From Macrostomum lignano (Eukaryota): a DNA stretch of 48,067 bases. The stretch covers positions 1-48,067 of the forward strand of contig NIVC01004376.1 in assembly GCA_002269645.1 (NCBI GenBank), given 5' to 3'. Both the position numbers and the translations under genes were made by a program. A model generated the notes under the pieces. It worked only from the letters and a program-made list of their open reading frames with translations. It ran no database searches and was not told the origin of the DNA. Within the stretch, counting starts at the first letter, position 1. Each line of letters opens with the position of its first letter. Shown in pieces: positions 1,895 to 48,067 of this stretch.

Positions 1895-4800
1895 CTGTGG
1901 GTCATTGTTTGTATATTTTTTACTAGTTTTGCGACAATCTGTAGATTTAACTCGAGTATGTTGTACTCACCCCAAGATTGGACCTTGTACGATACGCTCT
2001 TTGCTGTGTAGCGGAACGTTTCAGACTTTGATGTTACATTCGTCGTCAACAGTCCTGGCACACCGTTCACCAGCCGAAGATCGCACGAAGTGTCTAAAAT
2101 ACAATATTTAAATTGACAAATAATTGCGTGCATTATTGAGCAGGTTTTGATTCCATCAATTAAATGCGTACGTACTGTAAGGCAACCACTGAAGCATGTT
2201 GTAATTGGTTCCATATCGATTGATCATTCCATCGCTCGTGTGAGTCGCATTTTCATCGCTGAACTTGGAAACCACGGAACCTCCGGTAAAAACGGACTTG
2301 CATGTGGGTGCCAGCTCACGGAAACAGTCAAAAAGCTGACGCAAGTGACTGAGTCCGCTGTATGACGCTATGTAGTAGTTGTTGTCGTAGTACATCATGC
2401 GCTTTACGTACACCTTCTTTGCCTGTCTTTCCTGTTGCATATCTGTAAAAGAAAGATTAGACCGCTTATTTCCATTGTCCTAATTAAAATAACACACATA
2501 ATTAAATCTGCAAACCTACATCTCCTTGTGTACACCACGACTTCGGCCAACGAGAAGCAGCAGCCGATTCTCTCCCGTCTGAGAATCACATATCGTCCAG
2601 AGATTCCGCACATTATTTCAATTACCTCCCCAGGATTGAATGTTTCGGTTCTCTTCTGACACAGTATTGAGTAAAACATTGATGTTGTGTATGGATTGTC
2701 AGCCGTCGTTTGTGAGATCCAGGCTTCATACAGTCGAGCATTCTCTAAAGGAGTTACAATGGATTCGATGATAAAATCAATTTGCAAGCAGCATCGTGAA
2801 TATGCAAAATACACTATTTCGTTATCAAGTTACAGCCCGAGATACATTTTGGTAGCGCTACTTTAAATAACTGCCGTACACTTTTTGGTTTAATATGAAA
2901 CTCACCGTTGACATCGCTGCGCAGGTAAATCCACACCTCACTGACATACTGAACAGTCCGCATGTCGACGCGCCACCAGTCGAATGTTGATGCTGATGTG
3001 ACCGGAGTTGACGAGTAAATCTTTGACACAACATTCAGAGTAAAGTATCCATCATTGGCGGCAGAGGCGCTGTATCCTGATCGGAGATTGTAGTAGTTGA
3101 CCGGATTTCCAGTGATGTTGATCGGCTCCGAAACCATCGAGTATCCTGTGTTGAGTGCATTCACCTCACAGATGAACTGGTAGACCGACTGATAGGTGTC
3201 GCATTTGATATTGCGCCACGTTCCGCCGTGTTCCAAGTCCATCATGAGGCACTCCTTGCCTGGACTGCTGTGGCGCCAGAACTTCCAGTCAACTGGACTT
3301 CCATCCCACCACTTCCACTGACCGGATGATCGATTGTACTGGCCATCGATGTGGACAAACTTGTGCAGATTTTGACCACTGAAGATTTAAGCAACGAGCG
3401 ATACATTTTTCTGTCCTCTTATATTCGTATGTTTATATATATTTCAATATGCTCAAAGATACTAGACATAAATACTCTCGTACCTGGTGATGGAGTTGTA
3501 GAACATGTAGTAGAAGAGCTGGTTTTCCAGCACGGTCTTCGGACTGGCCAAATGTGCGCTGCCGTTCCAGTGCATTGACTCGCAAATCTCTTTGGCCAGC
3601 ATCGGCGGCGCGACCGTGTGAGGGAATGAGCTGTTCATGCCGTAGGGAACCCAGAAGCAGCTGTCCTTGTGCCGGAAGAAGCCGAACGGGCATTCTGGAT
3701 ATTATAATGACGACGCAACTTGTACATCTACTTTATTGTTTGTTTACTACTTGGAATCCTATTAAACGACAGGTATAAAAGCATGAACGAAACTCTGAAA
3801 ACACAGTCATGCAGTGCCTACGAGCTCGTACCCTCTTTGATCATGCAGCCTCGGAACAGAACGGACATCGTCGATGCGGAACCGTTCAGAATGACAATGC
3901 GAATCTCATTTGTTCGGATCAGGTGCGGCAGGGCTTGGTGGCGTCCGTTGGATGATGCAAATATCTGCAGTGGGAGAGTGAGTTGTAAGCTTATTATTAG
4001 AGTAAATACTTTGTATTCGAATTTGCATATTTGTAAGCTGATCAGCGACAAGGACGAACCGTTGCTTCCCCGAGAACTGTAAAGTTCACAAGCTGCCAGG
4101 TGCGCATGTGCCTGTACTGCATTAGGAACTTCACTGGGTCACCGCTTGTGTTCAACGAGAAGCCCGAGAAATGGTAAAAGTCCTTGAATAGGAAGTTCCT
4201 TGTGTTTGACGTTGGGCTTGACAGCGTTGCCTGGTCACCAGAAATTAGACCACAATCTGCGGGAAATGAGAACAACAAATTGCATGAATTACTACTATGA
4301 ACCATTGGATCAACGTACTTTGACTTATCAAGGTAAAATGGGAGAAATAATTGCGAGTCTCACCATCCGGATAGCCAAGGATTTCCAGCTTCGCCACTCG
4401 TCTGTTGTAATAACTGACGGGACGGAACTGAATTATTTTTGCTTTGAATGGCACTGAGACATCCATTCGAAGCTGCATCATGTCGTTGTAGTACTGGTTG
4501 AACTGGTGCTGCAATGGATAACAAAGCACTGCATTTTAAGAACCTGAGTCTTTAGCGTAGAAATACGAACTGATTTCGATCAAAAGGCATCTTACATCAA
4601 CGTAGCTGTTGCTCGTCTGATAAGACCTCACTGGAACCAGAGTTCTCGGGTCATCGCCGTAGAATATCTTGAAGCTCCTCACATAGGCTCGCCAGTAATT
4701 CGTTCTGTCCATCATTGATGAGCCTTGGATCACGAATCCAAGGATGGTGTGACTCACAGTCAGATAGATGTTTATTGGGTATTCTGAAACAGTTGTGAGC

Positions 4801-7800
4801 TTCTCTTGTGAGATTCAGCCATGCAATAGTCAAGATTTCATCACTTTTTCATGAGCATATTTGATATCTGATATTATCAACACAGGAAGCACTTCTGCCA
4901 CTCACCGGAGTAGAAGAACATGCCAGGAGGCTGCCGAGGCTTCTTTGGGGTGTTGAGCCGAAACATGTACGGTGACGGGTACTGACTTGGATCCGCGTTT
5001 GATGGTAGCGGAGTTGCTTGCGGGTCCAGCTGGTTCACCTCAATAATGCCGTCCTCCATGCCGATGGGATTGCCAAGCAAATGCAGCTGACCTGAAAAGA
5101 AAGCAGTTAGAGAATAATTGAGGTAAGGTCTTTCATTAAAGTATATTCTCCGAATTGCAGTCGTATTGTGCACACTGCAGGAGAGCCAGACCAAGTAAAT
5201 TTGAATGAAAATGATGAGAAGGAAGTAAGTCTTAGAAAATGAATAATATTATCTCGCTTAATTTAAGAACTTATTATCTAACGAAAAATGTAAAACGTAA
5301 AACGCTTTCAACTTTGGGTCATTCCGTGCGAATTTTTTTCGACTAACTTTTGCAGAGCAAAGTTTTTTTCAGTACATGACCCCTCATTTTAGGACAGTGC
5401 TAGTGATTCACTCGTCGCTGATTTGAAAAGCAGTGCGCAGCAGACAACTGTACGGCCTTCCAATAGGAAAGGGGGCCCATCGAACCAGCCCATTTTGCTT
5501 GAATCGATCAGTTCCTACTCGACCGTTGTTAGGATTTTTCGATAAAAATTGCTCTTCACTTACCAACAGCCGGAAAGCCGTAGGCTTCAAACTCGCAAAG
5601 CTGAGTCGCCTTCTGTAGTCCGACACCTTGCGGATTCCAGCATAGTTTGCGACCTAAAATTCCCAGGCAGAAACTTTAGTCGCAGAGCAAGAACTGATCT
5701 CGCATATTGCATATTACCTTTATTCTCACCTTGTCGATGTCAACAGCCCACACGTGCTCTCTCAGATAGCCGCTGCCTCGGCTTTGAATGACCTGTACGC
5801 TGGAATGCGTGATGGATGACGAGTTCGACACGAAGATCTCTGCGAAATCCAACTCTTCGTAGTCTGCAAAGAGAAGAAAAAGGAATTCAAATACAAATAG
5901 ATGACCCTTTAGAGAGCGGATCCCAAATCGGGATAATCGGGATCAGCTAGTTGAATCCCACCGTAGCGCAAGTTGGTCCTAGAGCAGCTAGAGATCTGGC
6001 ATGTATCCAGTGTGACACTTGGATTTGTTGTGTAACACCAAAATCTGTTTGTGTTGTCGCAGTTGCGGCAGTAGTTTTCGGAAGCAGTTATATTGCTGGC
6101 TGGAAAGTAGCCAGCGTATTGACAGTCGGAATTCGGAGCATGCGGACTGCTAGTTCCCCACTTCTGACAAGTGTATCCAGATGACGTCACATTCTGCCGA
6201 CCAAAGTAGCTCGTCCGACTGGCTGCGTTGCCGCACACGTCTCCACCATATTCATCTGTTGAAAGAGAGTCAGCATGGATAATGCACTGTGGTGATTTTG
6301 AGAATTCAACTCTACTAGCAATCAGCCTGTGTTACCTAGCTCTTCAATCAGGTCAACGACTCGAATTCGCTTAATTACTGTCGGATAGCCAAACGAGATC
6401 ATCCAAAAATGATATGGGTCACTGTAGTCTTGCAAGTTCGTAGCAAAGGCTTGATTATAGTTATAAAACATGTGAGCGTCTCCATCGTTGCCTCTCTCAG
6501 GATAACTTCCAGAGCTGTGGATTCGCCACTTGAAGTTTGATACGATGTAGGGCAGTGTTGAACCTTTGGTCTCTGAAAAAAGTTAGTATTATTGTATTAT
6601 TGTTAATAAAAAACATCTAAATTAATAGAGGCCAAAAATCGCATACCATATGGGCATCCATAGAGCTGCAGCTTCATTTCATTTAGTGTTTGATAAGCAG
6701 ACGGGCACACTCTGAGAGCCAGGGTCAGCAGATCCGGTAGGAACCGCAAACTGGCTGCTTGGCGAGTCTGCCGTGGACCAACTAGAAGCTGGAGTGAGTG
6801 AGTGAGTGGGTAAGTTTTGGTGTTTTGCGTGCCTCAATTGCAAATTGCGTGCATCAATGGCAAATTGCGTGCATCAATGGCAAAAGCAGGAGTGCGCAAA
6901 GCCTCTTCAGCCTGCTGGAATCATGCACTCCTACACTACGAGCTATACTACATTTCGACTAGAGTTCCGCTTGCGGATTAGACGGATATTAATTATGTGC
7001 CAGAATGATTTCTATAACATTCAATTATTCACAATCATAGATTTTAGGGAAAAGCAAGCAGGTAAATTTTTTCCGCAAGAAATCGTGGCAAAAATGGTGT
7101 ACAGGCAATTAAAACGCCTTCATCACTACTTACCATTCCATTGTAAAGCGATCTCCAGTACCGTGCATTCTCACTGTAGTATATATAGTAGCTGAGCACG
7201 GTGGTCCATGCATCAGAGACCACGTTGATGCCTGAACCGCCCTGCAGTGTTATCCACTGCAGCTTCACAAACTTGTCAAAAGTAGCCTAGAAATGCAACA
7301 ATGCAGAGTGCTCAAGTATGCCAGTAGGGAACAAAGCCAAATATGAAATAGATTTACCTGTAGATATACTCGTTCTTGGTGGAAGTAGTACTGTGGCCGA
7401 TACGTTGACAGGGTCTTTGTGCTCCTCACATCAAAGTACATCTGTATGCTTGTGCCAGTGCTGTATACGTCGTTTGAGTAGCCTATTTTTCTGATCGGGA
7501 TGGCGTGACGGAAGTCCGTTGACTGACCAATCAGCTGGCCATCTACGTAAGTGAAAAACGTGGTTGCATTGTCGTCGGTTGTCCAGGTGATGCAGACCTT
7601 GGCAAAGTCCTGAGTATTATGAGTTGCTGTCCGGTTGAGTGAGCTGTTCAGCATTTCGAGCACATATGCGGCCGGGCTGTTCACAGAGTAGTCTTTGTTC
7701 TCGATTTGCCTCCGACATATTTGATCAGGCTCGCTCCGTCTCCTTGCAGCATCAGCACGTAGCGAGGCTGGAATGCATGAGTATTGACTGGTTTTTTGGA

Positions 7801-10800
7801 AATGGGTGCTTTACTGGCATGAAAATTGGACATTAAGAACTTGTTTCCTACATTGGTCATTGCCTCCAAGTAGCCATACTGATCGGTGAACCAGATCTTT
7901 GCCAGTCTGTTGCGAATGAGCAAATTGAATGTGACATTGTTAGTCTGCAGAGCCTTCGAGATCGTCTCATCCGGCATCCAACTGACTCGCATGTCCACCT
8001 CCGAGTCGTAGTGATAGTCTGAGGATAGAGAGAAAAAATACCGCTTCGATTATTAATAAATTAATTTCATTACAATTTATGCTCTACTATATTTTAGCAC
8101 CAGTGAGAGTTAGAAAGCAACTCGGAAGCATGTTAACAACACATACGATGCATACGATGCACTTTTGAGTCTGATAGTGAATAAAGTAAAAATATTTAGA
8201 CTTCCTAAATGTTCTCGGACTCTACCAACTTTGGCTGCATAAACAGTGCAGAATCATACCACACCATGCAATACGGGTTTCTAACAGAACACGTTGGTAC
8301 TTTGTTTTGAGAAAATCACTTTCTGGGTTGTAATTCCTTGCACTATTAGTTGTACCTAGCATCTTGTATTCCTTGAATTTTATCACTTTTAATTCGCATT
8401 TTACGCTCATATCTTTCCTCCGTACTAATTTGTAGAATATTGTAGCCGTACATAGCTCGTAAAAGTGGATTTAAGCATGACAAAAATTAAGTTGCGTATA
8501 TTAGGCAAAAAATACTTTTAAATTTAACTCAAGCTTACACTCCTCTGCGAACACAAAGATTTGATCAACTCGAAAGAAACCCAAATCAGCTGACTTGGTG
8601 AGAACGAGATATCGACCAAGCATGACGCTGGAGCAGGTGAAGCTGTACTCGGTGAGGCTGCTGACAGATAGCTCCAGCGAGTCGCACAGAGGCCAGTTGA
8701 TAAAGGCGCGCTCTCCCAGAGATGAGTCATAGCTGCTGCTGACGCGCACGTGGATCGGGTACTGGCCACTGGTTGCTGTGGGCCGTGTGGGATGAGACGG
8801 GATGTGAGGCATTTAAAATGGGCATAAGTGCCGATGATGCGTTATTAAATATTGAGGGCAGTTTCTCACGGCTCTGGAAGTCGACACCCGAAATTGTATG
8901 CAGCAACTTCAGGTCCACCAGAACATAATAGTATTCAGTAGCATCCACATACGATGCCTGATTGTTGGTGTCAATGTTGAGAAAACCGCCAGATGTGGCG
9001 GTGTTGGACACTTCTCTATTGTTGAACCAAACTGTTTTGTAGATAGCAGCATTGTGGCCCTGCAGCTCCGCAACATTCGGGTGGTAGTAGTGAACTGAAA
9101 GTAAAGAAATTGGTACAGTTGTATTTCACTCGCTCGATCCAGAAATTGGACAAAATAAAATTCATTATCAAATAAGCTTACAACAACTAGCTGTTATGCA
9201 TGTCCCAATCCCACCAGTAACTTTATTGCAGAGCGGCTGTTCTGATGTTGACCCTGATAGTTAAATGAGTAAAATTAGGCACTGAAAACTTTATTCTAAA
9301 TGTAATGCACACAACTGAATTGATGGCGAGCAGGCCAAATAATTCTTACGGCTTATGCATTGCGAGCCGTAGTTCAGACTTGCGGGAACTCCTGAAGTCC
9401 ACGGGGCACAAGCGATGCCTTCCCTCGTTACATTGAGGTCGTGGATGAAGTATGCATGATCTCCCCTGCTGTGCACGCACGGAACTGAAAATATAAGAAT
9501 CTAGCAGACATGTTTCTCTCATACTTTTTGAATTACTGCTTTCAAATGATTTTACCTCCCGTGCGAACTGCGTTGCCCACAATTGCATCCTCGGGCTTGT
9601 TGAAGGAGGACCGGCCGTGGCCGCTCAGTGAGGCCGTCAACTTTCCAGGAATTCCAGGAAGCAGTGGTTGCATGCAGCCTAAAATTCAGCATCTTGTCCT
9701 TATTTATACGGGACACGCTATTAGTGAAATTATTTGTTTCAGTTTCTTACCGTGTTCAACACAGGGAAAATGTTGAATTGTGTTCGATGCTGAGAGTTGG
9801 GGTGGAGACGATAGAGGATTTGAGGTGAAAATCCAGACTTTGTTGGTATCAGACCGGAAACTGGTTGATTGATTTTTGAAGAAGTCGTCCACAAATAGAA
9901 GGTCGTTGTGCGCCACTCTCTGGTTGTGATCAGTCTCAGTGCTCCACCAAAAGTCATCGTTGCATCCCGAACACATTCCCGGGTGCATGTAGTAAACTAG
10001 TGGTCCCTTCGTGCACATATTTGGTCCTGAAAGATTACAAAGAATTAAAGTACGATGCAACTATTCTTATTAGAAGTAGAATAAAAATAAAGGACCTCTT
10101 TTTAAACAGTTGTTGGGAGCATGTTCGTTCAACTTACGCTTGAAGAGAGGTAATTCGCACACAAAGTAAAGGCGAGTCGAGGCAGTCGAATATGGAGTCA
10201 GTCCATTGAGCCAAGGACGCCACACAGCATACAAGTTCCCTGCCTTCTCAGCAGCCCAAGATCCATCGCTGACTGGCTCTCCATCAAACCATTCCCAGAT
10301 GCCGGTGCTTGCGTTTCTCCTGACACCAACATGCAACTCCCAATTGTAGCTGGAATGACAACAAGGTACAGTGAGCGATTCTTCATGCAATTCATTGGTA
10401 GAAACTTAGAATTATAGTTCGATAGAATTAAAATTACGCTAATGACTTTGCATCAGCAAAGACTTGAACGAAGAGTTCAACTTACAACTTCCCTAGGATG
10501 AAGTTCATCTTCATGGCGTCCTTCGGCATGAATAATGTTCCCCTCTGCCCAGCCCACCGATAGCTTTGGCAGTGTTTCTGCGCCACTTCTTGAGTTGCCA
10601 CCACTGTAATGGTTCGCAAGCAAACGTCAAAATGCGGGGTAAATCCATCCGGGCAGTCGTTGGTCATCTTCCCGAGCAGACTCAGCTCATCAGGAGACAG
10701 GCTGCCATTGACAATGTGGAATGTCAGCTTGAGCGGCTGCAGAACTTGTGGAAAGTACAGACTTTGGTTTGCAGACTGGACATTAAACTGCAATCAAGTT

Positions 10801-13800: not shown

Positions 13801-16800
13801 AGCGCAAGCTAAAACAACTTACGTGAGGATAAGCTGAGTAGGCCAAGTTATCAGAGCTATAGGTCAGCTGCACATGATGCATGTAAGCTATGCAGGCGGA
13901 GCAGGTATCAAAACGGCTACTGCCGGCTTGAATGCTGAGTACGTACAGAGTCACGAAGTCGTCAAACCACGCCTAAAGCACAGAAGTATGATTACGATTG
14001 TACGTAACTTGATGTGTTCAATATTGTGCCACAAAACTGTGAACAAGTGTGAAAGCTTGTGTTTCACCTGAATATAATCTCGGTAACCAGTTCCCGCGCT
14101 TATCCCATATACTGTAGGCGGGCTCCAAAATCCGAGGTATCGCGAACCTAAATACAGTGGATTTTTGTGATAAATTTCTGTATTAAGTACTGCAGTTTGA
14201 GTTACTAGCAAAGAGACTTTGATGGATTTCTCTGGCTCACTTGGCATGTCGTACATAACTCGAGGTCCAGTGTACACACTTTCAGAAACCAGAGCAAGAT
14301 ATGAAACTGAGGTGAAGTTGATTGAGTCACTGGCCAAGACCACGCCAAAGCCAATGTCCTGTCCGTTGCAAGTGAAGTAGATGGAGCAGTTGAAGGTATT
14401 GCAGTCAGTCCAGGTGATGGTGAGAGGCAGGTATTCCTCTGTGTCAGCAGCCACAGGTGCCAGCTGCCTAAGACTGATATCCCCAACTGTTTGGCGGTTG
14501 GATCCGTAAAAATCACCCTGGCGAATGGCAGCCGCCGCCAGCCACAGAGCGGTTCCATTGGCATTGAGGTCGAACTCGTAGCGTTTCTGCGGGTCACAGC
14601 ACAACCCGATGAACTTTTTACGAGGTATCGGTAACGAGAAACAGCAAATCACTTTCGCTTTATTGATGCAATGAATATATTATCGTATGTGAACGAATGC
14701 ATTTGAGTAGAAAAATGTACTACATGCAAGGTTGGTGATGCTTTTTGGTAGGTTTTGGGAGCTTAAAGATTTATTTTAATAGAACAAAAGACGGGAAAAA
14801 CATACCTGTCTCATGATGTCAGACTCGGCATAATAAGCAGAGAACAGAAGCTGAAGTCCCGCACTGTTTAATCGAATGTAGAAAGTCAGGTTGCCAGTCC
14901 GCAAGGCGCTCTCAACCAGCGACTTCGGAAGTCGGTAAAGCTTTCTGAGATCGGCCTCAGCTCCCATCTCATTCACTGGAATTGAGTAAGAAGTATTAGA
15001 CGTCACGAATTCGCTTTCTTCTATTAATGATTCTTAACTAGCTCGTATATTATGTGGTTAGTGAGCTTACCTTCATCTCCCATTACATTGATGTAGTTGA
15101 TGTCCATGCGAGCACTCCCAACGTTATTGACAGGGCTAACCAGCACCAAATAGCGAGCAGTCTGAGGCGTGTCGCAAGTAATAAATGAGGCGTAAATTGA
15201 CAGCGGTTCCACAAAGTTCCAGTTGAAGCAGGTGTCCCAGTTCTCAAAGGCCAGGTCACCGAGGCTACGATTCCACGAGTTGCTGGTCCTGAAGCTCACA
15301 TTGTATAGGTTTCGATCTGCAATGATTTTGCAATACTTTAAAGCACTGTTTTCGCTTCTTACAATACGTTTTAAGAGGATGAAATCACTTTAAACATAAA
15401 AAACAATTTTAATGGCTCAATGTGACAATAGATAAGCTTACACGGGTCGACACGGATTGCTGAAATTCGGTACTGCAACTTGAGATCAGCAAGGAGCCAC
15501 CAATTATTGGGCGGTGTTGCCACGGATACGCCGACCGTGTGCACATAAAATCCATAATTAATATTTATGCTATAAGACTGCATGATCCCAGTAAAGTACA
15601 GCACTTTATCGACCAGGATGTTGCCGATGTAATTATAGCTTGCCGGCGGATGGTAGTACTGACCTGAGTCACGAAATTTTAAAACAATTCGAGCTGTCAT
15701 TGTTATCAAGCATCATGAATAGGCGCATATGGTTTCAAACAGGACTTCGGTGCTAACAAACTATTTCGCTTGAATAACTATTCGCTACTACCATCCGTAG
15801 GGATTTTTAGGAAGGGCAGGCCAGCGTAAAAAATAGGTTGCAAAAATGCGAGTTCCGCACAATCTGCGGTACTATATTTGTATCTTTACTTCATTTTCTT
15901 AGTAAGTGTGAAAATTTTTTCTATATGTTTTCATAGTAGCAGCCTGCTAGTTAAGTATTGCTAGTTAAACGGAAAATATGGACATTGATAATATTATGAG
16001 CCCGATTCGTTTCAACTACATGTAAATCAGGCATCTCAACTTACTGCAGTAAGCTTTTTGGAGATCGTAGCAGTCTCTGATAACGCCTCCCTGATCGTAG
16101 CAGCTGGAGTATCGACTAGTTATATCTGCAAGAGGGTTTGCGGAATTACAATGTTTGTGCAAAAACTTTAGATATAGCTGAGTAAATACGCCCGTAAATG
16201 GTCAATTTTCCAAAGAAATGTCGGCCGATAAACTCACATTCCAAGCACGTGTTGTTGTAGTCCTTGTAGGTGCTGGTCACAGTGTCCCAGTTTGCACAGG
16301 CGAATCCCTGCTCAGTGACCGACCACTGCCCGTCGTAGAACTGGTAGTCAGCTCGGCTTAGTGCGCACTGCACGTGCTCTGCAAATCATTTTTATGAGAG
16401 CTAATCACTTTTTAACATTTTCCCTGCTTAAGGTAAACAATAAATATCTCACCCTCTTTTGACATGACCGATCCCAGGAATGCCTTCTCGGGACCTCTTC
16501 TCGAGTTTGATGTCGATGCATTAACGCGAACTCCAACTATACCGGACTCCGGGTACAACAGGGGCTCCAGGCAGCCTGCAAAGCAGTTTATATTGAGCAT
16601 TGGCGAATATTTTTTATGTTTTATTCCTCATAATTCGGATTACAGTTGTGCATAAATTCGGTTCATGCCGTCATAACTTAAGTCACTCACCATTTTCTAT
16701 TTGGGTTTTTTGGTACACTGAGTACTTTCCGGTCACACTTTGGACGCTCTCAGTGCCGATTGAGATGGCAAAGTTGTTCAGATTTGCTGAGTGCCAAATG

Positions 16801-19800
16801 TCATAAACAGCTGGTATGTATGCGAGCGATTCATCCAAAGCCCACAGGCTAAGCAACTCGTGCAAAGGTCCCTGTGTGTACTGTATGTTGTCATCTTCTG
16901 ACCCAACGTTGTTGTGATAGAATGTGTTGAGGACAACTGTCTGCTGTCGATCAGGCCCTAGAATTGCATTGCAGCTTCGTGAGCAGAATTTCAATTTGAT
17001 AGGGTCAAAGCATAAAGTCCTACTCACAAATCTTCTTGGGAATTTGGCACAAGAAGTACAAACTAGCAGAGCAGTCGATCCTATACAGCCCATTGTAGTC
17101 CGTAGACAAGTACACACACGAGCTGCTCTGAGTCTGGCCCATGTAGAATGCTCCCTGCTCAACTTCTTCTCCATCCAGCCAGTACCAGCGGCCGGTTGAA
17201 GAGTTTCGGTATGCACCGACGTGGAACTGCATGTTTCTAAATTAATGGGAAGGCAAGATTTGTTTGAGTGAAATTTCTTCTTTTATTTCTCATTGAACGC
17301 ATCAGTACCAGGCTAACTGACGGCCTAAGAAGATTGGCTTGATTTTTTTCTTGAATTAAGTAAAACAGAAGAAAGCAGGTTTTTTCTCTCTGGCGCTGCA
17401 TATTGACAATAATATTGAAGCTTTGAGTATACAGTATTTCGTTTTTCATTGAAAATAAGCAGTAAAGATAGGAATATTGAACAGGCTCGATACCCAATGA
17501 ACTTTCTCAACCACAGTTCACCTCATGTGACCGAAGTTGCGCAGCACGGCACTCTTGGGCATGAACAGAGTGCCATTCTTGCCATTCCAGTAGCGGCTCT
17601 GGCAGTACTGCAGCGAACTGTTCCAGTCCAGAGCTGACGGGACGATCCTGAGGCAGATGTTGTAGAGCGGCCGCCAGCCTTGCGGGCACTCGTCTTAAAT
17701 TCGTTAGCAAATATCAAGTTGAAAGAGGGTAAAAATGCAAAGGACTCTCAGCTTATCAGTCTGTTAAAATCCTCAATATGTACTGATTGATCTATTTTAG
17801 AAAAAAATTCAGAACTAATAATAGCTACAGTTCTACAGACCACCGATTGTCTAACTGAATCGGAATTTCAAGACATCGGAAGTTTTGCAATAAGTAGATA
17901 AGCAAAGTTCAAGGACAGACCAGTAATCTCGATGCCACAAATATTCATGATGTCAGCGGTCTCAATGGTGGCGTTAAGGCTAAAGTGCAGCTTGACACTT
18001 GACGGCGTGAGTATCAGCGGGATTAGAAAGTCTTCAACTGTGTTGTAGGTTGAGAACTGGAATGCCAGGGATATCAGAAAGTATGAGAAAAGCAATATAA
18101 AATACTAGCTGCAAGAACAATTGCATGCCTATTATAAAATACGAGTACGAGCTATAACAAAACTAAAAAAATCAGATCAACGAAATCTATCAACAGAAGA
18201 CCTACCTTGAACACGGTATCGTACCAGGGTGAACGCAACTGCTTGTCTGAACTATTGAGAGTGACTTGATATGTTATGTAGAATTCATCTTTGGTCTCCA
18301 AATCAGACAACTGAATGGAAGTTAAATAGTGAACCTCCTTGAAGTCAATGCGAATAATCTGTTCTTTCTCTGTCACGAATTTCTCAACTGAATAGTTGCT
18401 CGTGGCAATGGTACTGCGAACTGAAAATAGAAAATGATTGGTTTGTTACGCTCGTAGCCGTGATTGCTCATGTCTTAGCAGAATTCGTGGCTTTATATGT
18501 AGGATGCATATAATCAATAGATCTCATTGCGTATATATGATATTTGATGTAAACTACGTTCTGACAATAAACTTAACTTAAAAATGAAACTATAAAACTA
18601 TAAAGCAGAGAAAATTTCACCACTCTTGGATCATCTCCCCGTATCGAAGGGAAATGGCGAACATGTGTCTAAATTTCCCTTCTGCATAAATATTGCATCA
18701 TTTATTCAGGCGGTTCATCAAGCCTAAGCTTCAGAACGGTTGAGTGGCTTTCATCAAGTTGCTCTCCAGTCTGCTCTCAGATTGGAGTTCAGTTTTTGTT
18801 GAGCTTTTTGCATTTTTAACTCTGAGTCCCTCATACCTTCTTATCCCGCCGTGTTGTATCAGCGGCCGCAATCGGAACGTACTCCTACGGTGGCGAATCA
18901 GGACGAAGTAAAAGCGCTTTCTGCCGCTCTGGCCAGACTGGGTTCGAGAGAAGGTGCGAGAGGTCGCTTTGCGACTTGGCGCCAGCCTGTCCCTTGAATA
19001 CAGCACTTACTTGAGCTGAGAGCAGTGCACTCTGGGCGCAGAGCGCGACAAGTCGGAGAGAGCCGCTTACATGTAGGTTTCCTGTCCTGTCCTGATTTTT
19101 TACTCAGATTTGTTGATACAAACCGCGGACGGCTTTCGTTCACACAAAACATGTATGGGACCACTAGCTAAGCCCCAGGCTACAAAGGTCCAATGGTGCT
19201 GGTGTCCAATACTCGTAAAAAATGAAGATAAAATATTATCAATTCTCAATTCTCTAAGTTTGCCCGGGAAACGCAGAAACACAGAATTTGGTACGCAGAG
19301 GCCGCTGTAGAAAGAATGGGGAGATGGAGTGCAACTATAGATAGGTTCGGCTCAGACGCGGTGGGGAGGGGAAGAGTGCGATTCCGGGCCCACCAGACCG
19401 AGAGCCAGGTATTGCTTCTCGGTGCCCGAGGTAACAGCCGCGTATCCAAAAATCTCCTTACTGGCCTAAGTTTTTTTGTATACTGAAATACTAAATCTGT
19501 TTACAGAATAGTCAGTACTTGAGTGCGAATGGTAAAATTACTCTTTTTGTGACTGATGTATCACATATAGAACCACGAAGCAACACAAAAAATTGATGCG
19601 GTACATACATGTACAAATACAATCCAAGGACCACTAGAAGTTACCGTTATATCAGGACGTAACACTTGTACATTTCAGATCGTTTTGAAGACTCGCTTTT
19701 GTAATACGACTTTGAGCGTGCTACGTCCTGATACCATAGTAACTTCTAATGGTCCTTGTTACAATCCCAACATTTTTTACTGAATTGTAATATGCTCATA

Positions 19801-22800
19801 AGAACTTACGAGTAGCCGATGGAAATCCCAGTATCTCAAGCTTCCAACTATTCGAACTCCAGCTGCTGGTCAGAATTGCCTCGAGCAGCTGTGTCTCTAT
19901 TGGTCTCGGCAAGTAGTTTATTCCAGAAATGGTGTCAGCGTAACGAATCGTTTGGAATGTAATCTGAAATTCAGGTTTCAGATTTATGAAGATTACTATT
20001 GTCTTCGAACAGCTTCATTCAAATTACGCTGCAGGGTCTAATACATTTATGAATTATGCGTTACGCTACTAAAACTACCAAATTTATTTAGTGCTCTCGC
20101 AAGGCAACATTTCTTTGCCCGCCCTGTAAGTTTTTCGCGCCATAGTCTATACTTTCTACTTATCAGTAGACGAAACCGGACATGGCTCACAACAAAAAAT
20201 CTCTCACTATGTTATTTGCCTGGTCCAGTACGTTTTGCATTTGCAAATAGTTTTTGCTCAATGAATAACGAAGCCTGTAGCTATTAGGGCTGCCGCGCAA
20301 GCCTTTGGAGCGCTTGCCGCTGCCCTGAACAATCATGCCGGTGACAGTCATGCTGATGGGGAAGTAGAATCGAACATAGGATTCTGTCGTGCCAAGTGAC
20401 TCAAATCGCAGGGAACTTTCTACGAACGGAGTCTCGGCAGCTGACAGGGGCAGGGAGAAGAGGCCTCCCAGGTTCTGCGTGTTGCCTGACACCATCCACT
20501 CGAAGTGAACGAACTCGCCCAGCCCCATCGGCATCTGGGCCAGGGCGTTCAGCTGCGGATCGGCTAAAAGAAATTGAAGTCAAATAGTGAGCTATCAAAT
20601 TTTTTTGTTAGAGTACGAGTACCCTACGCTTATTTATTAAGTCACGCAAAACTAACCATGCAGAGTTCCGAAAACCTCAATTTCAGCGATGCTCAAGTAC
20701 TCCGAGATTCCATCGTTTTTGCGTACCGTAAGGTACTGCGCGCTCTGAATAATTCACCAGGTGAGAAAAAGCGCTCAAAATAAAATACTCTAATTACTAT
20801 TCCACTCAATAAGTTGAGTGCAAACTCACTTTCTGACACGGAAACATCAAGTAGTCAATGTACTTTAAATCATCGGGCTTTTGATACGTGTTGCCCTGAC
20901 GATAGCACAGGTCAGCTTCAGCAAATGTGGGAATTCCAGCCATAAGGGACAGTTGAGCAAAGTACTCGGTGTTCCGGATAGTGTAAATATCTGCAATGCA
21001 GTTCAAAACGCTTTTCGTTGAGAATTAGTCTGCTTGAAAGTTTTCAATGAAGCATACTCGTATTATGAACATATAGTTATATGTATGATAATTTTCACGG
21101 CTCTATCAAACTAAAGTAAAGCCATCTTACGGGCATCTCCAGCGTTCCTTGTGTAGACAACGACATAGGAGAAGTTCCTTGGTACAATCATGTCCACATA
21201 GGCCCATCGCAGTACACTGCTCGATGTGACGATGAAGTAAGAATGTGTATTACCGTAGGTATTTGTCACACCATCCGTGGCCCTGTATCCAGGATGGGTG
21301 CTGCTGTATTGAGAAGAAAGCTGGACCGGCTGGTTTCGAGAGATCAGCCATGGAAATTGAGCGCCTCCGTTTATCTCTGCAGGGATCAGTCGACGGAGTA
21401 CATGAAATTTTAAAAGTTTTTATGACAGGTTACTAAATTTTTTAAAATTTCAACAATCAATCTGCATACAAAAAGCAGTTTGACTGGAATTTCCAACTCT
21501 ATAGATATGGACATCCTTTAACATGCAACTACTTTAAATGATACTATTGCTCAAATATTATTACTAAGTATGAGTATTACTAGCAGTATTACTCAAATTA
21601 TTTCAGTGCCTATTAGACAGGAAAGCCCTCAAAGCGAACAAATCGGAACTTGTAAATCCAGAAGCAAAGCTTACCATCGGCTAGCCTTCCATACAGCATG
21701 AACCTTAATTGGTAGTTCCCGCTGAGCTCTGCTTGAATATGCCGCATCGCCAGTAATAGCTTTGGCGGCTTCATCGAAATAAAATTTGTATGCCAGACAC
21801 TAGTGCTGATGAAAATTGGCACGCTATAGCCATCGACACCGATGTCAAGAGGAATCCAAGTTTTGAGGTCAGCTGAACAAAGTCGGTAAGCTTCTCTGGC
21901 TCCCAGGTCTTGATCAGCAGAGTCCGAGCCCCGGCCGTACCCAGCGTAGTAAACCCATACCAGGGATGTGAAGGTTACCTGAAAAATGTATCTATTCTAT
22001 ATAGCTTTTCTTTAGTGAAATGTAACGGAAAAAGAGAAAAAAAGCCAACCTGATGCCAGTCTTGATAGTCTTGAAAAAAAGAAGACGGCTGCCAAAACCC
22101 AGAATTGATTGAGTCTGAAATAAAAGAGTACATGAGGATACCATGAAGATAATAATATTTTAGTACAAACAAGCTCAAATTGCTCACTCGGCACGCCAGG
22201 GAACTGCACCGCCACTCCGTTGTACTCGGTGTCGCTCGGCTTCTTGGAGAAGCCGGCAGAGTTTATGGTGAAGTTGACGGCATCGCTCGGGTCGGAAAAC
22301 ACGCCCACTAGAGTCGAATCGATGTAGGCTTCAATGGTGAGGTTCTCATCAGCGCTGCTGTTGTACTCAAACTTGAACGACAAATCGTGAAAGTCGAATC
22401 GACGTTCTGACTTCCCATCTGAGCAAGGGTGCTCGTCTTGTTGAGGAGAAACACCGCGTTCAGTGGGATCTCGCTGGAGCTGATGGCTTTGTTCAGCACC
22501 CAGCCGTTCGAGATCCACAGCACGTTCGATGCGGAGTCCCCAGTGAGTCGAAACCGGATTCTCTGAAAACAGTTTCGGTTTGGAGTAATTGCTGATTTCT
22601 GGGAAAATTGTAACTACGAGCGAATCGAGTGAATCTTTGAAAATTTCATAGGAAAGCGCTCGCTGTCAGAACGAATAAATGAAGCCCGTGAGTTCCTTCT
22701 ATTTCCTTGATGCTTCGATCAGGCTTAACCAGCTAAATAAAATAAAAGTCAACTTATGTGCATCCTAGATATTTAGGTAAAGTATACATTGGGGCTTCAT

Positions 22801-25800
22801 GAGCTGTGGTGCTTTATTAAACGTATAAGCAGAAAGAATTTAAAATTGAGGTGCATTCTAGCTGTGCTTAAAGATAAGGCTCTTACGACAGTCGATACAA
22901 TTTTGAGAATTTTTGATGATACTACACTGCATGATTAGCTGCGAGATATAGAAGTCATTGCAATATCATTTGAACTTTTCTAAGGCATTCCTTCCAGAAA
23001 GTTAAACCAATACAACTCGTACCTGATCAAGCATGCTGCTGTATGTTGTTCCCGCGGTGAGGAAGAAGTCTGCGTATGTGTCCCGAATCAGGGTGGAAAA
23101 GGTGACGTTCCTATTTGTCTGCAGGTCCTTTTCCATTGACTCAGGGATCCGGTTGACGAATGAGCTTCCCGGGATGAAGTTTACGTCGTAATCTAAAAAA
23201 AATTGTTTTAATTGAATTCCCACTTTTCTAATTTTACTTGAAGCATCTGTCCCTATTTTTCTGCCTGAACAGACTTACAGTGATCTCCGTAAATCTTCAC
23301 ATGGTCAACAGTGTGGTAGCCGCAGCTCTTTCTCCTAGTAATCACCACGTATCTGCCGATGGTGCCAGGCGGGCAGTGGAAGAACAAATGGCCGTCGCTT
23401 GGGTCAGCTCTCTCTTGCACACCGCACGACGTCCAACCGTCGAAGGCCGCTTCGTCCAGACTGGAGTTCCACGTGTTCGACACTCCGGTCCAGATGCATT
23501 TCATTTGATTTACTGAAAACATAATTTGCATATTTTACACTAGCTGTTTGTGTCCTGTGCCTGACTTCAAAACACTGTTAGGCAAAACATACCTGAGGTA
23601 GTGTAAGGAATTATGAGTGTAACAAACGTTGGAGTCTTCAAGTCAATCAGTACGTAGTAGATGCTTTCAGCTGTCACAGTTGACTCGTAGTTGCTAGTCC
23701 GAATAAGACTGAAGCCGCTGGTTTCGTATGTGGATGACAGCTTCACTTTCTTGTTCATGAAAAACTCAGCGAACATGCTCTGCATCCCCCTTCCACTGTA
23801 GTAGTTCACGCTTGAGTAGGTTCTGGTTGCTGGGAATTATAGATAAGCTTGTAAATAAAATTTTACGTTTGCACTGCAACAACCAACTAAATTGATAAAT
23901 TTAAATAGGTTTGAGTTGATTTTGAAATAAATAAGTATTGATTCTTACAGCAATCCGGCACTTCACAAGCTACCCGGGAAACAGCACTGTTAACGCAAGT
24001 TATCGACAAGGATGCTGAAAAATATGGTTTTGCGGTATTTATAGCCAAAGTGCGCCTGCATAGGTAGTACTAAAATAGTTGACAAATGATGCCAGCTCAC
24101 ATGTCCTGCACTTATTTGTGGCAGCGGGCCAGGCGCTGTACGGAATGCAGGCTTCGCCGTTCTGGTTCACGTCCAGATCGCCGTAGTACTCCCGGTACCA
24201 TTTGCACACTCGGTGGCCTGCGTTAGTATGAGTATAAAAAATGTATTCGAACGCCCGCGCGTCATACATTCGGATGAAATTGTGAAAAATTTGTGATGCT
24301 TACTTCCAGTCCTAAAGGTGTTATTTAGTAGCACGTACTCAGGTCTGGCGTAGTTGATAAAAGATGAAGCGGTGAAGCTGACAGTCAGTTTTCCTGGGAT
24401 GCCAAAGAGCAGAGGAATTCGTTCTCCATCTTCTGCAATAGAAAGTATTTTTAGTCATAGGCCAGGTTTAAGCGTAAGAACGAAAAATATAATGCATTTA
24501 TATTGATTTTTGTAGAAAATGCTCAGAGAATAGGATACAGGATACAGGATAGGATATAGGAATAGGGTATAAACTCATTTCAATCGTCTGTCTAATCAGC
24601 AAGGGATCAGGGGTTAGAGGTTAAGACTGATTTTCGAAGTACGCTCGAGACCTTTATTTCCCTGAATGAGCCCCCAATCCCGCTAAATTGACCCCAATTC
24701 TTTGAATTGACCCCTCATTCCCTTGAATTGACCCCATTCCTTAGAATTGCCTTAGAATCGATTACCTTAGAATTGAATTATCATTCAGTTTTAACCATGC
24801 AGAATGGCTCACTGGCTTATTTATAGTCGAAATTCAAAATGCATTTCAGCAATTCCCCTTTATGATCTTGTACAGTCGCTTTTGTTAGTGTCTAAGGGAA
24901 AATGATGTTCTAAGCAAAAAGCATCAGTCCTTACGAACTTTGACATTAAAGCGTCTCTTTAATCCCAACTCTCCCTTTGATGCTTGGCCTACCAACAACT
25001 CCCAATCGATCCCTGGCATCCCCCATGAGCCAAAGGATTTCAGTAATCACCTCATAAGTCTTGAAAAATCTCAGCAATTCCCTCGTGAGACTTGACATCT
25101 CCGCCATCCCGCCATGAGCAGCAGCATTTGTCAGGGTTCCAGTGCCGTTCAGGCAATGAATCCATGTGACAAATGAAGGTGTAAAACTTGTCAGAAAACA
25201 GGAATATACTAATTCTGCTACTTACAAATAATTTTTTGTTTGTTTCAAAACTGGATCTGAATATGGTTTAAATAATGAAACCTAACCTAGATTTAGATAG
25301 GGAAAAATGACTCTAACATAAATTTGCAAAAATCCCTATACATTACTGAAATAAGTTCCAATGGCTGTCAACTGCAGTGTACAGATCAGGTTCGACAAAG
25401 TAAATTCAGAGTTTGGAAATTGACAAGCGTCTGGCTCGTAGATAATAAACAAATTGATATTAAATAAACTTTTTTTCTAGGAAGTAAAATATCTAGAAAG
25501 CTTTGCGAATTTTGCACACTTATGGCAATCTCGGAAAAGCAAGCTTTAAAGGAACTTTTTAAGTGTCTTTCAATTCAGAAAAGGCAAACCATATCTTCTT
25601 GGTAGCAACCAAACAAGCTATGAAGTTGCGCTTTGAATTACCAAGGTCATTTTTATCTCTAATATAATCTCTAAACAGTTTTAGTAAAAGATCCTTGTCA
25701 TTTAGTGCAAGCTTTGCCGATGAAAGTTTTTTGCCACCCTTTTTATTAGAAGCTGTGTGCGCCCTGGCGCACTTTAAGCCTCATTGTCACACAACCGGCG

Positions 25801-27953
25801 AGAGGCATTGCTGCCCATTCTGCCGACCCCCTGAAGAGGCACACAAGCGCGCGGATACGTACGCAGTCATACGCACAGGCACACACTCACACGGGAGTTT
25901 ACAGCGGCCCTGACTTTATTTATCGTTACGCATGTACACTTCACTGCGCCTTGGGGGTTGACCCATATATAAGCAAGGAAACTTTTATCTGCTGGCTTAC
26001 TCAAACAAATATATTCGTACGCCCTCCAGCTCGATGACCCTGTAGTAGCCAATGGATACGAGGCACCGCTGGTTCGCCAGAACTTGTATCTGTCTCTCAC
26101 AATCGAACCGCACGCACTTGCCTGTCCAGTTTTTCATTGGTAATTAGTAAAATAAATAAATTGTAACAAGCATAAAAGTTGCAAAATAATTTTATTGTAC
26201 GTTCACGCATTTCTGGAACTCACTCCACAGTACGTCATTCCAAAAGCATCAGAATTTCCGTTTTGAATTTGATAGAAAAAATACAGCGGACCGTAAGATG
26301 CCAATCCTGTGAATTCGTTTATGCCATCATCGCTTCCACTAACGTCGATATCGGTTGCGAGTGTCAAAAATGATGGAGAGCATGTATCTGGAACATTGTA
26401 TATTTTGGGTAATATTGGGTATTGTTTTTCAAAGCTGCATTGTACATACTAATAGTTTTCTCACCATTGGTAGTCATAGCCGGTGTCTGGCACAGAAAAT
26501 ACTGCTTCATTGAGCAGTTTTGAAGGTACAAACGGCTAAAATCCGTGTTGTAGGAGGCGCAATCGAGCCCACCTCCATCGGTCAACCCGAGATAGAACAG
26601 ATCGTCCGGAACTGGATTTCCCTCAGAGTCAAAGAACCGGTTGTTATGCGAGACGTTCCTGGTGACCCCAACCCAAGTGTTCCAGTGGAGCCATTCGACT
26701 TGACCAAGTATTGTAAGATCTTCCCTCGATCTCGGGGCAAATAGAGTTCCAGATTTTCCCATTCCGGCACAGCTGGCTGCAGCGGCAGGCTGGCCGATGC
26801 CGCTGGTGAACAGACGGATGCAGCGTTCGAAGTGCTGAGTCCACGGAGGCGTGCAGACTGCGGGTTTCAGAGCAGTGACAAGTGGTGGATAGAGAACTAG
26901 TCATTTCAAGTAGGTTATACTAATTGAATAAGATCTACTGGGTTGCTAGCTAAGTAGGGTAGCGTATTCTCCCTATTCTAGCATATTAGAGTCATCAAAC
27001 TTTAAAATAGGCATCGTGAGCTTAGTAGGACAAATAAGGAAGACGGAAATGACTAGCACTTAAAGCTAAATTTAGCAACAGGCGGTCGTGAAGTCGGAGA
27101 GAGATAGAATGAAGGCAATAAACCGAGGCGAGGGGCAGACTATATATTTAAAGCAATAGCTCGTAAACTGGACCTCTCCGTTCGCCACGCGCACGCAGAT
27201 GTCTAAAATATCGATCGTGAGAAAATTATACGCTCTAAATAGATAGAGCACCCAACAGGAAAGTAAAACGGCCCAATTGGGGACAAAATTTAGTTGTCTA
27301 AATGGAAATTAGGAAGAAAGGATAATTATTGTCAATTCTGTGGATAAATCTGACAGAAAGTTTTGCTTCGCTTCAGCTCAATCTGTGATAGAAAAGCGGA
27401 GTTGGAGTTAGGATTGACAACAGTTTTAACACTGCAGCGCATAGCACAAACAGCGCTCAGATGCGCTGCACAATCGCAGCGGATGTGCCGTTGGCTGCTC
27501 ACCTGACCTCCTTACAAAATGCTAGTTGTGACTATTGACTATATAGATACAAGTATGTTTAATAGATTACCCTTTCATGATATAACCACGGACTACTAAA
27601 GTAGACCGACGGGACTATAACGTAATCTTCAAGTGGTCCTTGGATATACTCTTGTAGCTTCAGTAGTTGTCGTTTTTATTGAAAAGCTTAAGTCACGAAC
27701 TTCAAATTATTTAAAAGATACTTTTACCCAAACCTGTTATGTATTAACATTCTGCAATCAGTAGACTATGCAGTAAAGCATTATTCTTACTTGTAGTTTA
27801 CATGTAGATAGCTAGATTTAGCCAATTTGAAGATTTAGCCATCTATTTTTAAAAAGAATCTCAGCAGTACTTACAGTACTTAGCCTGGCTTTCCAGTACG
27901 ACTGCCAGCAGTAGCAAACAGGTGAATAGCAGTAGAAAAGTGGCGCGCAGCAT
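1152..27953 (-). CDS. Gene B: giant signal-peptide-bearing mosaic lectin protein (4 CTL, ~7 F-type lectin, multiple F5/8C, kringle, LamG); about 4,500 aa to this point (hand estimate); 3' end unresolved
   Basis: Dozens of GT-AG exons join with matching phases from ATG 27953 down to the exon 1152-1273; two apparent single-base frameshifts (~22410, ~5610). Confidence 0.92.
1965..3694 (-). CDS. Gene B exons: fourth CTL, F-type lectin, unassigned module and discoidin-like stub
   Basis: ECPFGFFRHKDSC..WKWWDGSPVDWKFW..EC..WRNIKC..FICE; AANDG..WWRVDM..V.EVWIYLRSD..C..GRYVIL..LAEVVVY; CDLRLVNGVPGLLTTNVTS. Confidence 0.85.
3832..10658 (-). CDS. Gene B cassette copy 3
   Basis: CTL from 10658 (DCPDG..RGTLFMPKD); Y ~9750-10020; stub (GCMQPLLPGIPGKLT); half-kringle 9350-9484; F-type lectin ~8540-9095; X ~7360-8020; F5/8C ~6650-7290; split F-type lectin 5564-6572; F5/8C ~4360-5090 (LGNPIGMEDG..FVIQG..LEILGYP); short F5/8-like 3832-~4255. 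Confidence 0.88.
5962..6255 (-). CDS. Gene B exon: complete kringle domain
   Basis: CGNAASRTSYFGRQNVTSSGYTCQKW..NYCRNCDNTNRFWCYTTNPSVTLDTCQISSC; 294 bp, phase 1-1. Confidence 0.95.
6840..6884. repeat. 20-bp tandem duplication in an intron
   Basis: GCAAATTGCGTGCATCAATG x2 plus GCAAA. Confidence 0.9.
10659..17693 (-). CDS. Gene B cassette copy 2
   Basis: CTL ~17030-17693 (ECPQGW..NGTLFMPKS); Y ~16690-16960; stub (GCLEPLL..); half-kringle 16238-16378; F-type lectin ~15070-15700; X ~14240-15010; F5/8C ~13590-14150; F-type lectin ~12725-13376 (ICEIEVYG); F5/8C ~11135-12510; short F5/8-like to 10659. Confidence 0.88.
11830..12090 (+). mobile_element. Degenerate non-LTR retrotransposon fragment (APE endonuclease N-terminus) in a gene B intron
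   Basis: VDILQLNLHNCIAN (from 11912) and, one frameshift later, FIEPWTKKGKILNI match the ILQ.NL.H / QEPW..G.I motifs. GC-rich sequence from ~11640 may be the preceding part of the element. Confidence 0.6.
17921..26896 (-). CDS. Gene B cassette copy 1
   Basis: CTL 26465-26896; Y 26001-26387; discoidin stub 24304-24432; half-kringle 24101-24217; F-type lectin 23279-23829; X ~22190-23192; F5/8C ~21670-22170; F-type lectin ~20660-21380; F5/8C ~19810-20560; short F5/8-like 17921-~18420. Confidence 0.88.
18731..19450 (-). mobile_element. Possible decayed LINE 3' fragment (RNase H / C-terminal region) in a gene B intron
   Basis: GC-rich insert in an AT-rich intron; weak echoes of VP.H..GNE (VPYM..VNE), W..RQ.K (GWRQVAK) and R..R.L..GH (RSTFRLRPLIQH) across broken frames. 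Confidence 0.3.
19625..19758. mobile_element. MITE-like inverted repeat
   Basis: 41-bp arms 19625-19665 and 19718-19758 (35/41 complementary); TACAATCC repeated at 19618-19625 and 19760-19767. Confidence 0.6.
24528..24780. repeat. Degenerate low-complexity repeats in a gene B intron
   Basis: AGGATAC-like run at ~24530-24570 and TTGAATTGACCCC / CCTTAGAATT-like units at ~24685-24780. Confidence 0.6.
27875..27953 (-). CDS. Gene B first coding exon: signal peptide
   Basis: aaaaATG then MLRATFLLLFTCLLLLAVVLESQAKY; phase-1 donor gtaagt joins the phase-1 acceptor at 26897. Confidence 0.9.

Positions 27954-31690: not shown

Positions 31691-48067
<16,377 letters not shown>

Follow-up and report, generated by a model that had tools for sequence, protein, structure and literature searches.

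A multi-domain block in three tandem copies within a predicted giant secreted mosaic protein of Macrostomum lignano

Several proteins are built from super-repeats, among them titin (7- and 11-domain super-repeats), nebulin (7-module), reelin (eight repeats) and LRP1/LRP2 (four ligand-binding clusters). Here we describe a gene of the flatworm Macrostomum lignano, called gene B below, that carries a ten-module block, or cassette, in three tandem copies on the minus strand of contig NIVC01004376.1 (assembly GCA_002269645.1, positions 1 to 48,067; this whole stretch of 48,067 nucleotides is referred to as the window). Gene B resembles titin, nebulin, reelin and the LRP proteins in having a tandem intragenic block of several domains, on the order of 1,000 residues long, whose domains are closest to their positional partners. 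It differs from them in its content, which combines lectin-type beta-sandwiches with a kringle and with modules of no assigned class, and in having only three copies, which are much more diverged, at 22-26% identity.

The kringle IV expansion of apolipoprotein(a) also combines tandem duplication of an exon block, frame-compatible intron phases and kringles; unlike the ancient unit of about 18 exons and ten modules in gene B, however, its unit is one two-exon kringle present in many nearly identical copies. Contactin-associated proteins contain discoidin, laminin G and fibrinogen-like domains. Like them, sea urchin nectin (six discoidin domains) and sea star Sfp1 are secreted or surface proteins made of discoidin and other lectin-type domains that bind multivalently (PMC6410801), but their relation to gene B is limited to common domain families, and neither the order of the cassette nor the two modules that we call X and short occur in them. 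In Macrostomum lignano itself, Mlig-ap1 and Mlig-ap2 share with the predicted product of gene B giant size, secretion and internal repeats; Mlig-ap1 has a C-type lectin domain, and the pair is described as having Lys/Arg-rich regions, von Willebrand D, EGF and TIL domains, thrombospondin repeats and repeats of 221-255 residues (PMC6410801). Pfam scans of gene B report none of the domain families in this description, and we rejected the idea that gene B encodes either of these two proteins. We found no description in the literature of the domain combination of gene B in flatworms. Internal tandem duplication within a gene is well known, and gene B is a further example with unusual content that will not surprise specialists.

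Three collinear cassettes in gene B

We modelled gene B with an exon-chaining program of our own (codon log-odds, splice-site matrices and phase bookkeeping), trained iteratively and followed by correction by hand and against a paralog. The model runs on the minus strand, as do all gene B features below, from 27953 to 19 in 66 exon pieces and comprises at least 4,382 codons with zero stops, given three single-base corrections; its splice sites are intact. The predicted product of gene B is a giant mosaic protein, secreted and at least 4,382 residues long, with 56 N-glycosylation sequons. Exon 1 (27875..27953) has its own ATG and a signal peptide, called by eye from the sequence (MLRATFLLLFTCLLLLAVVLESQA, followed by KY), and ends in a well-formed phase-1 donor, which pairs with the acceptor at 26857.

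The cassettes follow in order: cassette 1 at 26857-17921 (residues 28-1208; 1,181 residues in 18 exons), cassette 2 at 17693-10659 (residues 1210-2422; 1,213 residues in 20 exons) and cassette 3 at 10658-3832 (residues 2423-3672; 1,250 residues in 21 exons). Each reads, from its N-terminal end, as a C-type lectin-like module (CTL), a spacer exon (Y), a stub, a half-kringle, a first F-type-lectin-like module (FTP-a), module X, a first discoidin-type module (F5/8C-a), a second F-type-lectin-like module (FTP-b), a second discoidin-type module (F5/8C-b) and the short module. A first-pass annotation of the window, made from the letters alone, had proposed a ten-module cassette of about 1,300 residues repeated three times in fixed order. 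Three collinear copies are indeed present, at a size of about 1,200 residues, and the coordinates given for them were right to within about 40 nucleotides, with the first cassette exon starting at the acceptor at 26857 and not at 26896.

The junctions between cassettes point to a single gene. An exon at 10486..10787, within an open reading frame at 10793-10485, carries the short module of cassette 2 directly into the CTL of cassette 3 (...SLLGKMT followed by NDCPDGF...), with no intron or stop between them. As this exon spans the boundary, cassettes 2 and 3 form one coding unit. The boundary between cassettes 1 and 2 is a compatible phase-1 intron, and the heads of cassettes 2 and 3 have neither a start codon nor a signal peptide.

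Further support comes from related proteins of the same species. A search with cassette 2 (1,214 residues) found in UniRef the Macrostomum lignano entries P0009 (1,868 residues) and P0010 (795 residues), both named 'C-type lectin domain-containing protein'. P0009 is 79.7% identical to the gene B model over 1,864 residues with seven gaps, and by tblastn the identity of the paralog to the window exons is 53-97% per exon; the two entries therefore come from a paralog and are not encoded in the window. P0009, a computational model, reads as a signal peptide, cassette 1 and then cassette 2 through module X in one protein, and thus lends independent support to our exon model and to the joining of the cassettes. 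Its N-terminus (MPSVSRQLIFTIVLATVVPELQA, followed by RYFC) agrees with exon 1 of gene B, and both P0009 and P0010 read through the boundary between cassettes 1 and 2. A third entry, P0001 (A0A1I8JCQ5, 226 residues, 'F5/8 type C domain-containing protein', Macrostomum lignano), is 100% identical to the exons at ~14147-12727 in cassette 2.

The three cassettes align nearly end to end. By blastp, cassettes 1 and 2 match over residues 1-1160 and 2-1195 (22% identity, E=2e-40), cassettes 1 and 3 over residues 1-641 and 3-647 (26%, E=9e-38) with a second segment, and cassettes 2 and 3 over residues 1-814 and 2-757 (26%, E=4e-59) and again over residues 926-1212 and 966-1247 (E=8e-14), in agreement with the earlier view that the copies are old and highly diverged. 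An all-versus-all blastp of stop-to-stop minus-strand frames gave collinear off-diagonal matches at 26-48% identity, with offsets of ~6.5-7.0 kb (copy 2 versus 3), 14.7-16.2 kb (1 versus 3) and 8.2-9.5 kb (1 versus 2). The same search on plus-strand reading frames, as a control, returned low-complexity matches only.

Similarity is also specific to position. We compared the ten modules of each cassette by Smith-Waterman alignment against 200 shuffles. Between copies 2 and 3, nine of the ten modules were significant (z 5.9-39), the other being Y (z -0.4). Copy 1 was clearly significant against both partners in CTL, FTP-a, X and F5/8C-b (z 7-29); its stub and half-kringle reached z 18 and 6.6 against copy 3 and only 3.6 and 3.0 against copy 2, and its F5/8C-a, FTP-b and short modules were weakly similar to their partners (z 1.4-5.1). 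Y had no significant similarity between any copies (z <1.3). A z of 5 was reached by 1 of 270 non-corresponding module pairs from different cassettes, and hhalign comparisons between module types, including those within a cassette, gave nothing above 4% probability except for the cassette CTL against a further CTL in the tail of the gene.

Gene structure follows the same pattern. At least 12 introns agree among all three cassettes in phase and, to within two alignment columns, in position, and several others agree between two of them; the first-pass annotation had reported phase agreement for some junctions. Exon sizes are nearly equal in cassettes 1, 2 and 3 for the stub (129, 123 and 123 nucleotides), the first X exon (170, 170 and 167) and the last FTP-b exon (88, 88 and 90). 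Sequence echoes singled out earlier were recovered as well: copy 1 has PLLFGIPGKLT, copy 3 has PLLPGIPGKLT, and VTFTSLVWV, AWFDDFVTL and ATFDKFVKL each begin an exon behind a phase-0 intron. Both ends of the block lie at phase-1 introns, and duplication of the whole block therefore preserves the reading frame.

Position-specific similarity together with shared introns and exon sizes shows block duplication rather than independent exon shuffling, as the first-pass annotation had supposed when it set the recurrence apart from random shuffling: each module matches its positional counterpart only, and the introns are common in place and phase. We put at roughly 85% the probability that gene B is one Macrostomum lignano gene whose core arose by two tandem block duplications, a figure that joins origin and single-gene structure and leaves function outside it.

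Families and remodelling of the modules

The family labels of the first-pass annotation fared unequally: those for CTL, the second discoidin and the N-terminal half of a kringle stood, those for both F-type-lectin-like modules and the first discoidin are weakly supported, and X and short have, save for a single environmental fragment, no detectable relatives. The CTL module (exon 26857-26465 in cassette 1; 17693-17522 and 17236-17028 in cassette 2; 10658-10486 and 10349-10138 in cassette 3) matches Pfam Lectin_C (PF00059) at 30.5 bits in cassette 1, 38.2 bits in cassette 2 and 21.5 bits in cassette 3, the last just under the cut-off of 22.6. The copy in cassette 3 is without two conserved cysteines. 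On reading the alignments of the cassette copies, we did not find the sugar- and calcium-binding motifs (EPN or QPD, and WND); their positions instead read LTDGGG and LYLQN in cassette 1, GQTQSS and LYRID in cassette 2, and AEKAGN and LTPYS in cassette 3.

The second discoidin-type module, F5/8C-b, is spread over exons 20563-20208 and 19963-19810 in cassette 1, 12492-12140 and 11284-11134 in cassette 2, and 5091-4906, 4783-4596 and 4508-4364 in cassette 3. Its single sequences fall under the Pfam cut-off (16.8 bits, PF00754), and a profile of the three copies finds lactadherin C2 at E=3e-8 together with the factor V, factor VIII and neuropilin b domains. The paralog P0009 has a precomputed PF00754 match. 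By these matches the module is a true discoidin domain.

The half-kringle (24217-24101 in cassette 1, 16378-16238 in cassette 2 and 9484-9350 in cassette 3) was recognized from a five-sequence profile built together with the stub: 49 of its 52 PDB matches were kringles (plasminogen 1e-6, hepatocyte growth factor 3e-6), and these always covered only the first 30-35 kringle residues. Against Pfam PF00051 (cut-off 34.3), cassette 2 scored 13.8 bits and cassettes 1 and 3 gave no match. Cassette 2 alone has an extra kringle exon (16045..16125; 81 nucleotides, phase 1-1) that adds the last three cysteines of the kringle-like module; this exon is also in cassette 2 of the paralog and is absent from cassette 1 of the paralog. 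The module thus reads as a truncated kringle with three cysteines in cassettes 1 and 3 and as a degenerate six-cysteine kringle in cassette 2. Taking as a full kringle a module of about 80 residues with six cysteines and more than 34.3 Pfam bits, only one element qualified, an extra exon in cassette 3 alone, inside FTP-b (5962..6286; Pfam Kringle 53 bits, E=4e-14).

Between CTL and the half-kringle lie the Y and stub exons. Y (26387-26224, 16957-16691 and 10026-9751 in cassettes 1, 2 and 3) is a spacer of 56-92 residues at a fixed position that retains only a short SGS-DD-like motif. The stub (24432-24304, 16575-16453 and 9678-9556) has 41-43 residues with the pattern PLL.GIPGKLT.S....S......PE.A..GN..RTG and by eye recalls the opening strands, with the A.DGN motif, of an F-type-lectin/discoidin domain. 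Possibly the following kringle truncated a former domain and left the stub as its remnant, which would parallel the kringle insertion into FTP-b of cassette 3.

FTP-a occupies 23829-23593 and 23512-23279 in cassette 1, 15663-15442 and 15316-15071 in cassette 2, and 9094-8870 and 8775-8539 in cassette 3; FTP-b occupies 21376-21131, 20990-20830 and 20744-20657 in cassette 1, 13376-13143, 13055-12919 and 12814-12727 in cassette 2, and 6572-6379, 5863-5730 and 5653-5564 in cassette 3. Pfam scores stayed below the cut-offs for both, at 18.2 bits for FTP-a (F5_F8_type_C_2) and at 20.4 bits, or 24.2 bits in the paralog, for FTP-b (F5_F8_type_C), and the three-copy FTP-a profile matched the eel fucolectin/agglutinin 1k12 at E=0.13. 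Both modules end in a C-terminal strand of the LSIAEIEVFG type, a common feature of the fold class. F-type lectins bind fucose through a His...Arg...Arg motif; no copy among the FTP-a and FTP-b sequences that we read has it in full, and only FTP-a of cassette 2 keeps HT before the WW..DL strand.

F5/8C-a (21978-21675 in cassette 1; 13972-13823 and 13728-13584 in cassette 2; 7286-7134 and 6788-6647 in cassette 3) scored 13.6 bits in Pfam, and its profile matched discoidin-2 (E=0.02) and neuropilin-1 (E=0.03) over the C-terminal 100 residues of the domain only, which places the N-terminal part of this domain in the presumed end of X. A tandem repeat, three copies of a 20-bp unit at 6825-6884, sits in the intron between the two F5/8C-a exons of cassette 3.

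Module X has 169-203 residues and lies at 23192-23023, 22562-22188 and 22114-22050 in cassette 1, at 14975-14806, 14586-14241 and 14147-14068 in cassette 2, and at 8018-7852 and 7699-7358 in cassette 3. It has no credible match in Pfam or among PDB sequences, where the one hit was at chance level (CD8 alpha, E=0.21). An exhaustive HMMER search of 1.84 billion representative proteins with an X-exon profile found one true relative, P0006, a fragment of 106 residues from a JGI metagenome contig. We regard its six other matches as noise, being bacterial or repetitive proteins that share a motif of about 30 residues, LTWT..D....Y.VY.DG..IG, which is fibronectin-III-like by eye. A laminin-G-like identity for X, considered from its strand pattern, was rejected, as there is no Pfam match and no hhalign similarity to the laminin-G-like region in the tail of the gene. 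An AlphaFold model of X plus the first discoidin of the paralog, built from a six-sequence alignment, was all-beta and unusable, with a mean predicted local distance difference test score (pLDDT) of 33.6.

The short module (99-116 residues; 18420-18206 and 18056-17921, 11069-10870 and 10787-10659, and 4256-4090 and 3964-3832 in cassettes 1, 2 and 3) gave no PDB match at E up to 10 and, in Pfam, only chance-level matches to unrelated families (E 0.02-0.12). It had been labelled F5/8-like, and this label fails: no such resemblance was detectable in Pfam, in PDB or by hhalign against the F5/8C modules. The copies also depart in content from the first-pass account: Y is not detectably conserved, copy 3 has the extra kringle and copy 2 the extra kringle exon.

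Behind cassette 3, the tail of gene B (19..3694) contains a fourth CTL (Lectin_C 30.6 bits) fused directly to an F5/8C-type domain (F5_F8_type_C_2 29.2 bits, above the cut-off of 27.8); an unclassified segment comes next, and a laminin-G-like region with a weak score (Laminin_G_3 19.7 bits) comes last. Only the CTL aligns to the cassettes, so the tail is not a fourth cassette. Gene B may continue beyond the edge of the window after the tail.

Origin of the copies and competing readings

We propose, with good support, that an ancestral block of ~18 exons and 7-9 kb was duplicated in tandem in two rounds, presumably by unequal crossing-over. Its order would have been C-type lectin-like, spacer, 41-residue stub, kringle, F-type-lectin-like, the unclassified all-beta X, discoidin, second F-type-lectin-like, second discoidin and short. 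After duplication the copies would have diverged to their present identity and then been remodelled locally, with loss of the copy 2/3 intron, the second kringle exon missing from copies 1 and 3, and a complete kringle acquired by copy 3 inside its second F-type-lectin-like domain. The kringle insert of cassette 3 is accompanied by a new phase-0 intron, and no kringle is present at that place in cassettes 1 and 2. Other differences in structure are that CTL and the first discoidin are single-exon in cassette 1 and carry one intron each in cassettes 2 and 3, that cassette 3 has no intron where the others separate their last two X exons, and that it has an additional intron in the second discoidin.

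Copy 1 most likely branched first, because two additional introns are common to copies 2 and 3, which also resemble each other more in most modules. The triplication, in turn, predates the gene duplication behind the ~80%-identical paralog, because P0009 reads cassette 1 and then cassette 2 up to module X. Over the aligned part of gene B (window 27953-14242), identity to P0009 is a mosaic, at 96-100% for the half-kringle, FTP-a and X of cassette 1, 94-98% for CTL and X of cassette 2, and only 55-62% for CTL, Y, the first discoidin and short of cassette 1 and Y of cassette 2. Gene conversion between the two loci may account for this pattern, or the paralog model may be chimeric.

Several observations weigh against this account of gene B. 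The gene model is our own computation, and its backing comes from computational models of a paralog. Three frame breaks of the +2/-1 type interrupt it, which would be assembly indels or signs of a decaying copy. The branching order is not clean, since in the stub and FTP-a modules copy 3 is nearer to copy 1 than to copy 2, a conflict that may reflect differing rates or a mosaic history. Scores for both FTP labels and for the first discoidin are sub-threshold; no fold could be assigned to X, short and Y, and the AlphaFold model of paralog X plus the first discoidin had low confidence. Finally, function is read from domain types only, and the usual lectin motifs were not seen on reading the alignments.

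The frame breaks bear directly on whether the copy in the window is a decaying pseudogene, with the paralog as the functional gene. The first lies in X of cassette 1 (22403..22406), where the window reads CAG AAC GTC GA TTC GAC against QNVFDF in the paralog; either the assembly lost one base here or the frameshift is real. A second is an out-of-phase intron (24432..26224): the donor after 26224 is in phase 0 and the acceptor before 24432 needs phase 1, and with a single G added at the donor the reading would become ...TYCG-E-DGERIPLL, which matches ...SYCG-D-DERTPLL in the paralog. At the third (5651..5730), exon 5863-5730 ends in phase 0 and the homologous exon from 5653 has two bases too many, with the frame of the latter set by LCEFEAYGFP against ICEIEVYGYP in cassette 2. 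One-base deletions are frequent in long-read assemblies. We favour assembly error, with a one-base deletion at each site, because all three breaks fit such a deletion and there is no stop in ~13 kb of coding sequence. Decay would explain both the breaks relative to the paralog or the other cassettes and the absence of most of the protein from public protein sets; the open frame and intact splice sites, and the uniform type of the breaks, make it unlikely. As an observation on the assembly, the breaks at 26224, 22404 and 5652 are possible uncorrected indels, of a kind by which other gene models would be affected.

A different question is whether selection has maintained the cassette as a unit in which the ten modules pack or act together. 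The first-pass annotation drew this conclusion from the kept order, and the step fails: duplication of a whole block keeps order by descent, and no selection on a unit is needed because the block was copied whole and intragenic rearrangements are rare. The order is nonetheless identical in three copies at ~25% identity and in the paralog, and the reading frames have all been kept open. Set against this, the cassettes differ in content (the gained kringle, the half-kringle and the unrecognizable Y), and the AlphaFold model, which covered two modules of the paralog, gave no confident structure. Among the proteins searched, moreover, no relative outside Macrostomum had the same domain string. Maintenance as a unit therefore seems improbable to us, about as much so as decay. 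A bolder form of the idea, in which the cassette is a new composite binding unit whose parts, stub and truncated kringle included, fold together and cooperate, three units to a chain, with X and short as new macrostomid-restricted extracellular folds, we consider speculative and a little less probable still.

That the locus holds three separate tandem genes, or alternative transcripts, in place of a single gene is very unlikely. Public protein sets hold only fragments of the gene B locus, such as P0001, as such a view would have it; but the sole signal peptide is at 27953, copies 2 and 3 lack a start of their own, exon 10787-10486 covers the boundary between them, and the frame-compatible intron between copies 1 and 2 is crossed by both paralog models. 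Least probable of all, to the point of being negligible, is that exon shuffling of common domain types built up each cassette separately, so that the cassettes are alike in composition only: internal domain boundaries do all fall at phase-1 or phase-0 introns, as for mobile modules, and copy 3 did gain a kringle by insertion, but significant similarity is confined to positional partners with no signal within cassettes, the family-less X and stub recur in place too, and introns inside domains are shared in position.

Genomic neighbourhood and predicted function

Upstream of gene B and in the same orientation lies a separate polycystin-1/REJ-like gene (48067-32475, minus strand), which ends at ~32.4 kb and leaves the window at its right edge. 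Pfam places along it an F5/8C-like piece (47957-47412), a CTL (~47050-46880), Fibrinogen_C (44525-43851, 84 bits), PKD repeats and REJ (43589-39388, REJ 60 bits), Polycystin_dom (33766-32985, 77 bits) and PKD_channel (32867-32475), all on the minus strand; its ectodomain is unusual. Its span includes an (AAGT) microsatellite of 187 units at 37115-37863 (97% matches), presumably intronic, and a 15-bp unit repeated eight times at 33831-33953 adjoins the Polycystin_dom exons. Directly upstream of the first exon of gene B, a 51-bp unit is repeated three times (28662-28816).

As for gene B itself, its product is probably, though with low confidence, an extracellular string of beta-sandwich binding modules engaged in multivalent, low-affinity binding of glycans or matrix. 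The reading of a secreted multivalent binder follows from the signal peptide, the sequons and the chain of lectin-type beta-sandwich domains. The C-type and F-type lectin-like modules lack the canonical sugar-binding residues of these families, and the ligands may therefore differ from the sugars that such lectins bind. Macrostomum lignano is tractable, with RNA interference and in situ hybridisation in use (PMC6410801), so that the function of gene B can be tested.

Most of this gene, which exceeds 4,300 codons, is absent from the public protein sets of Macrostomum lignano, in which we found a 226-residue fragment and two partial paralog models. The locus offers a clean and well-resolved example of how a giant extracellular protein can grow: a frame-neutral block of some 18 exons was duplicated twice, followed by intron loss, exon loss and the insertion of a domain within a domain.

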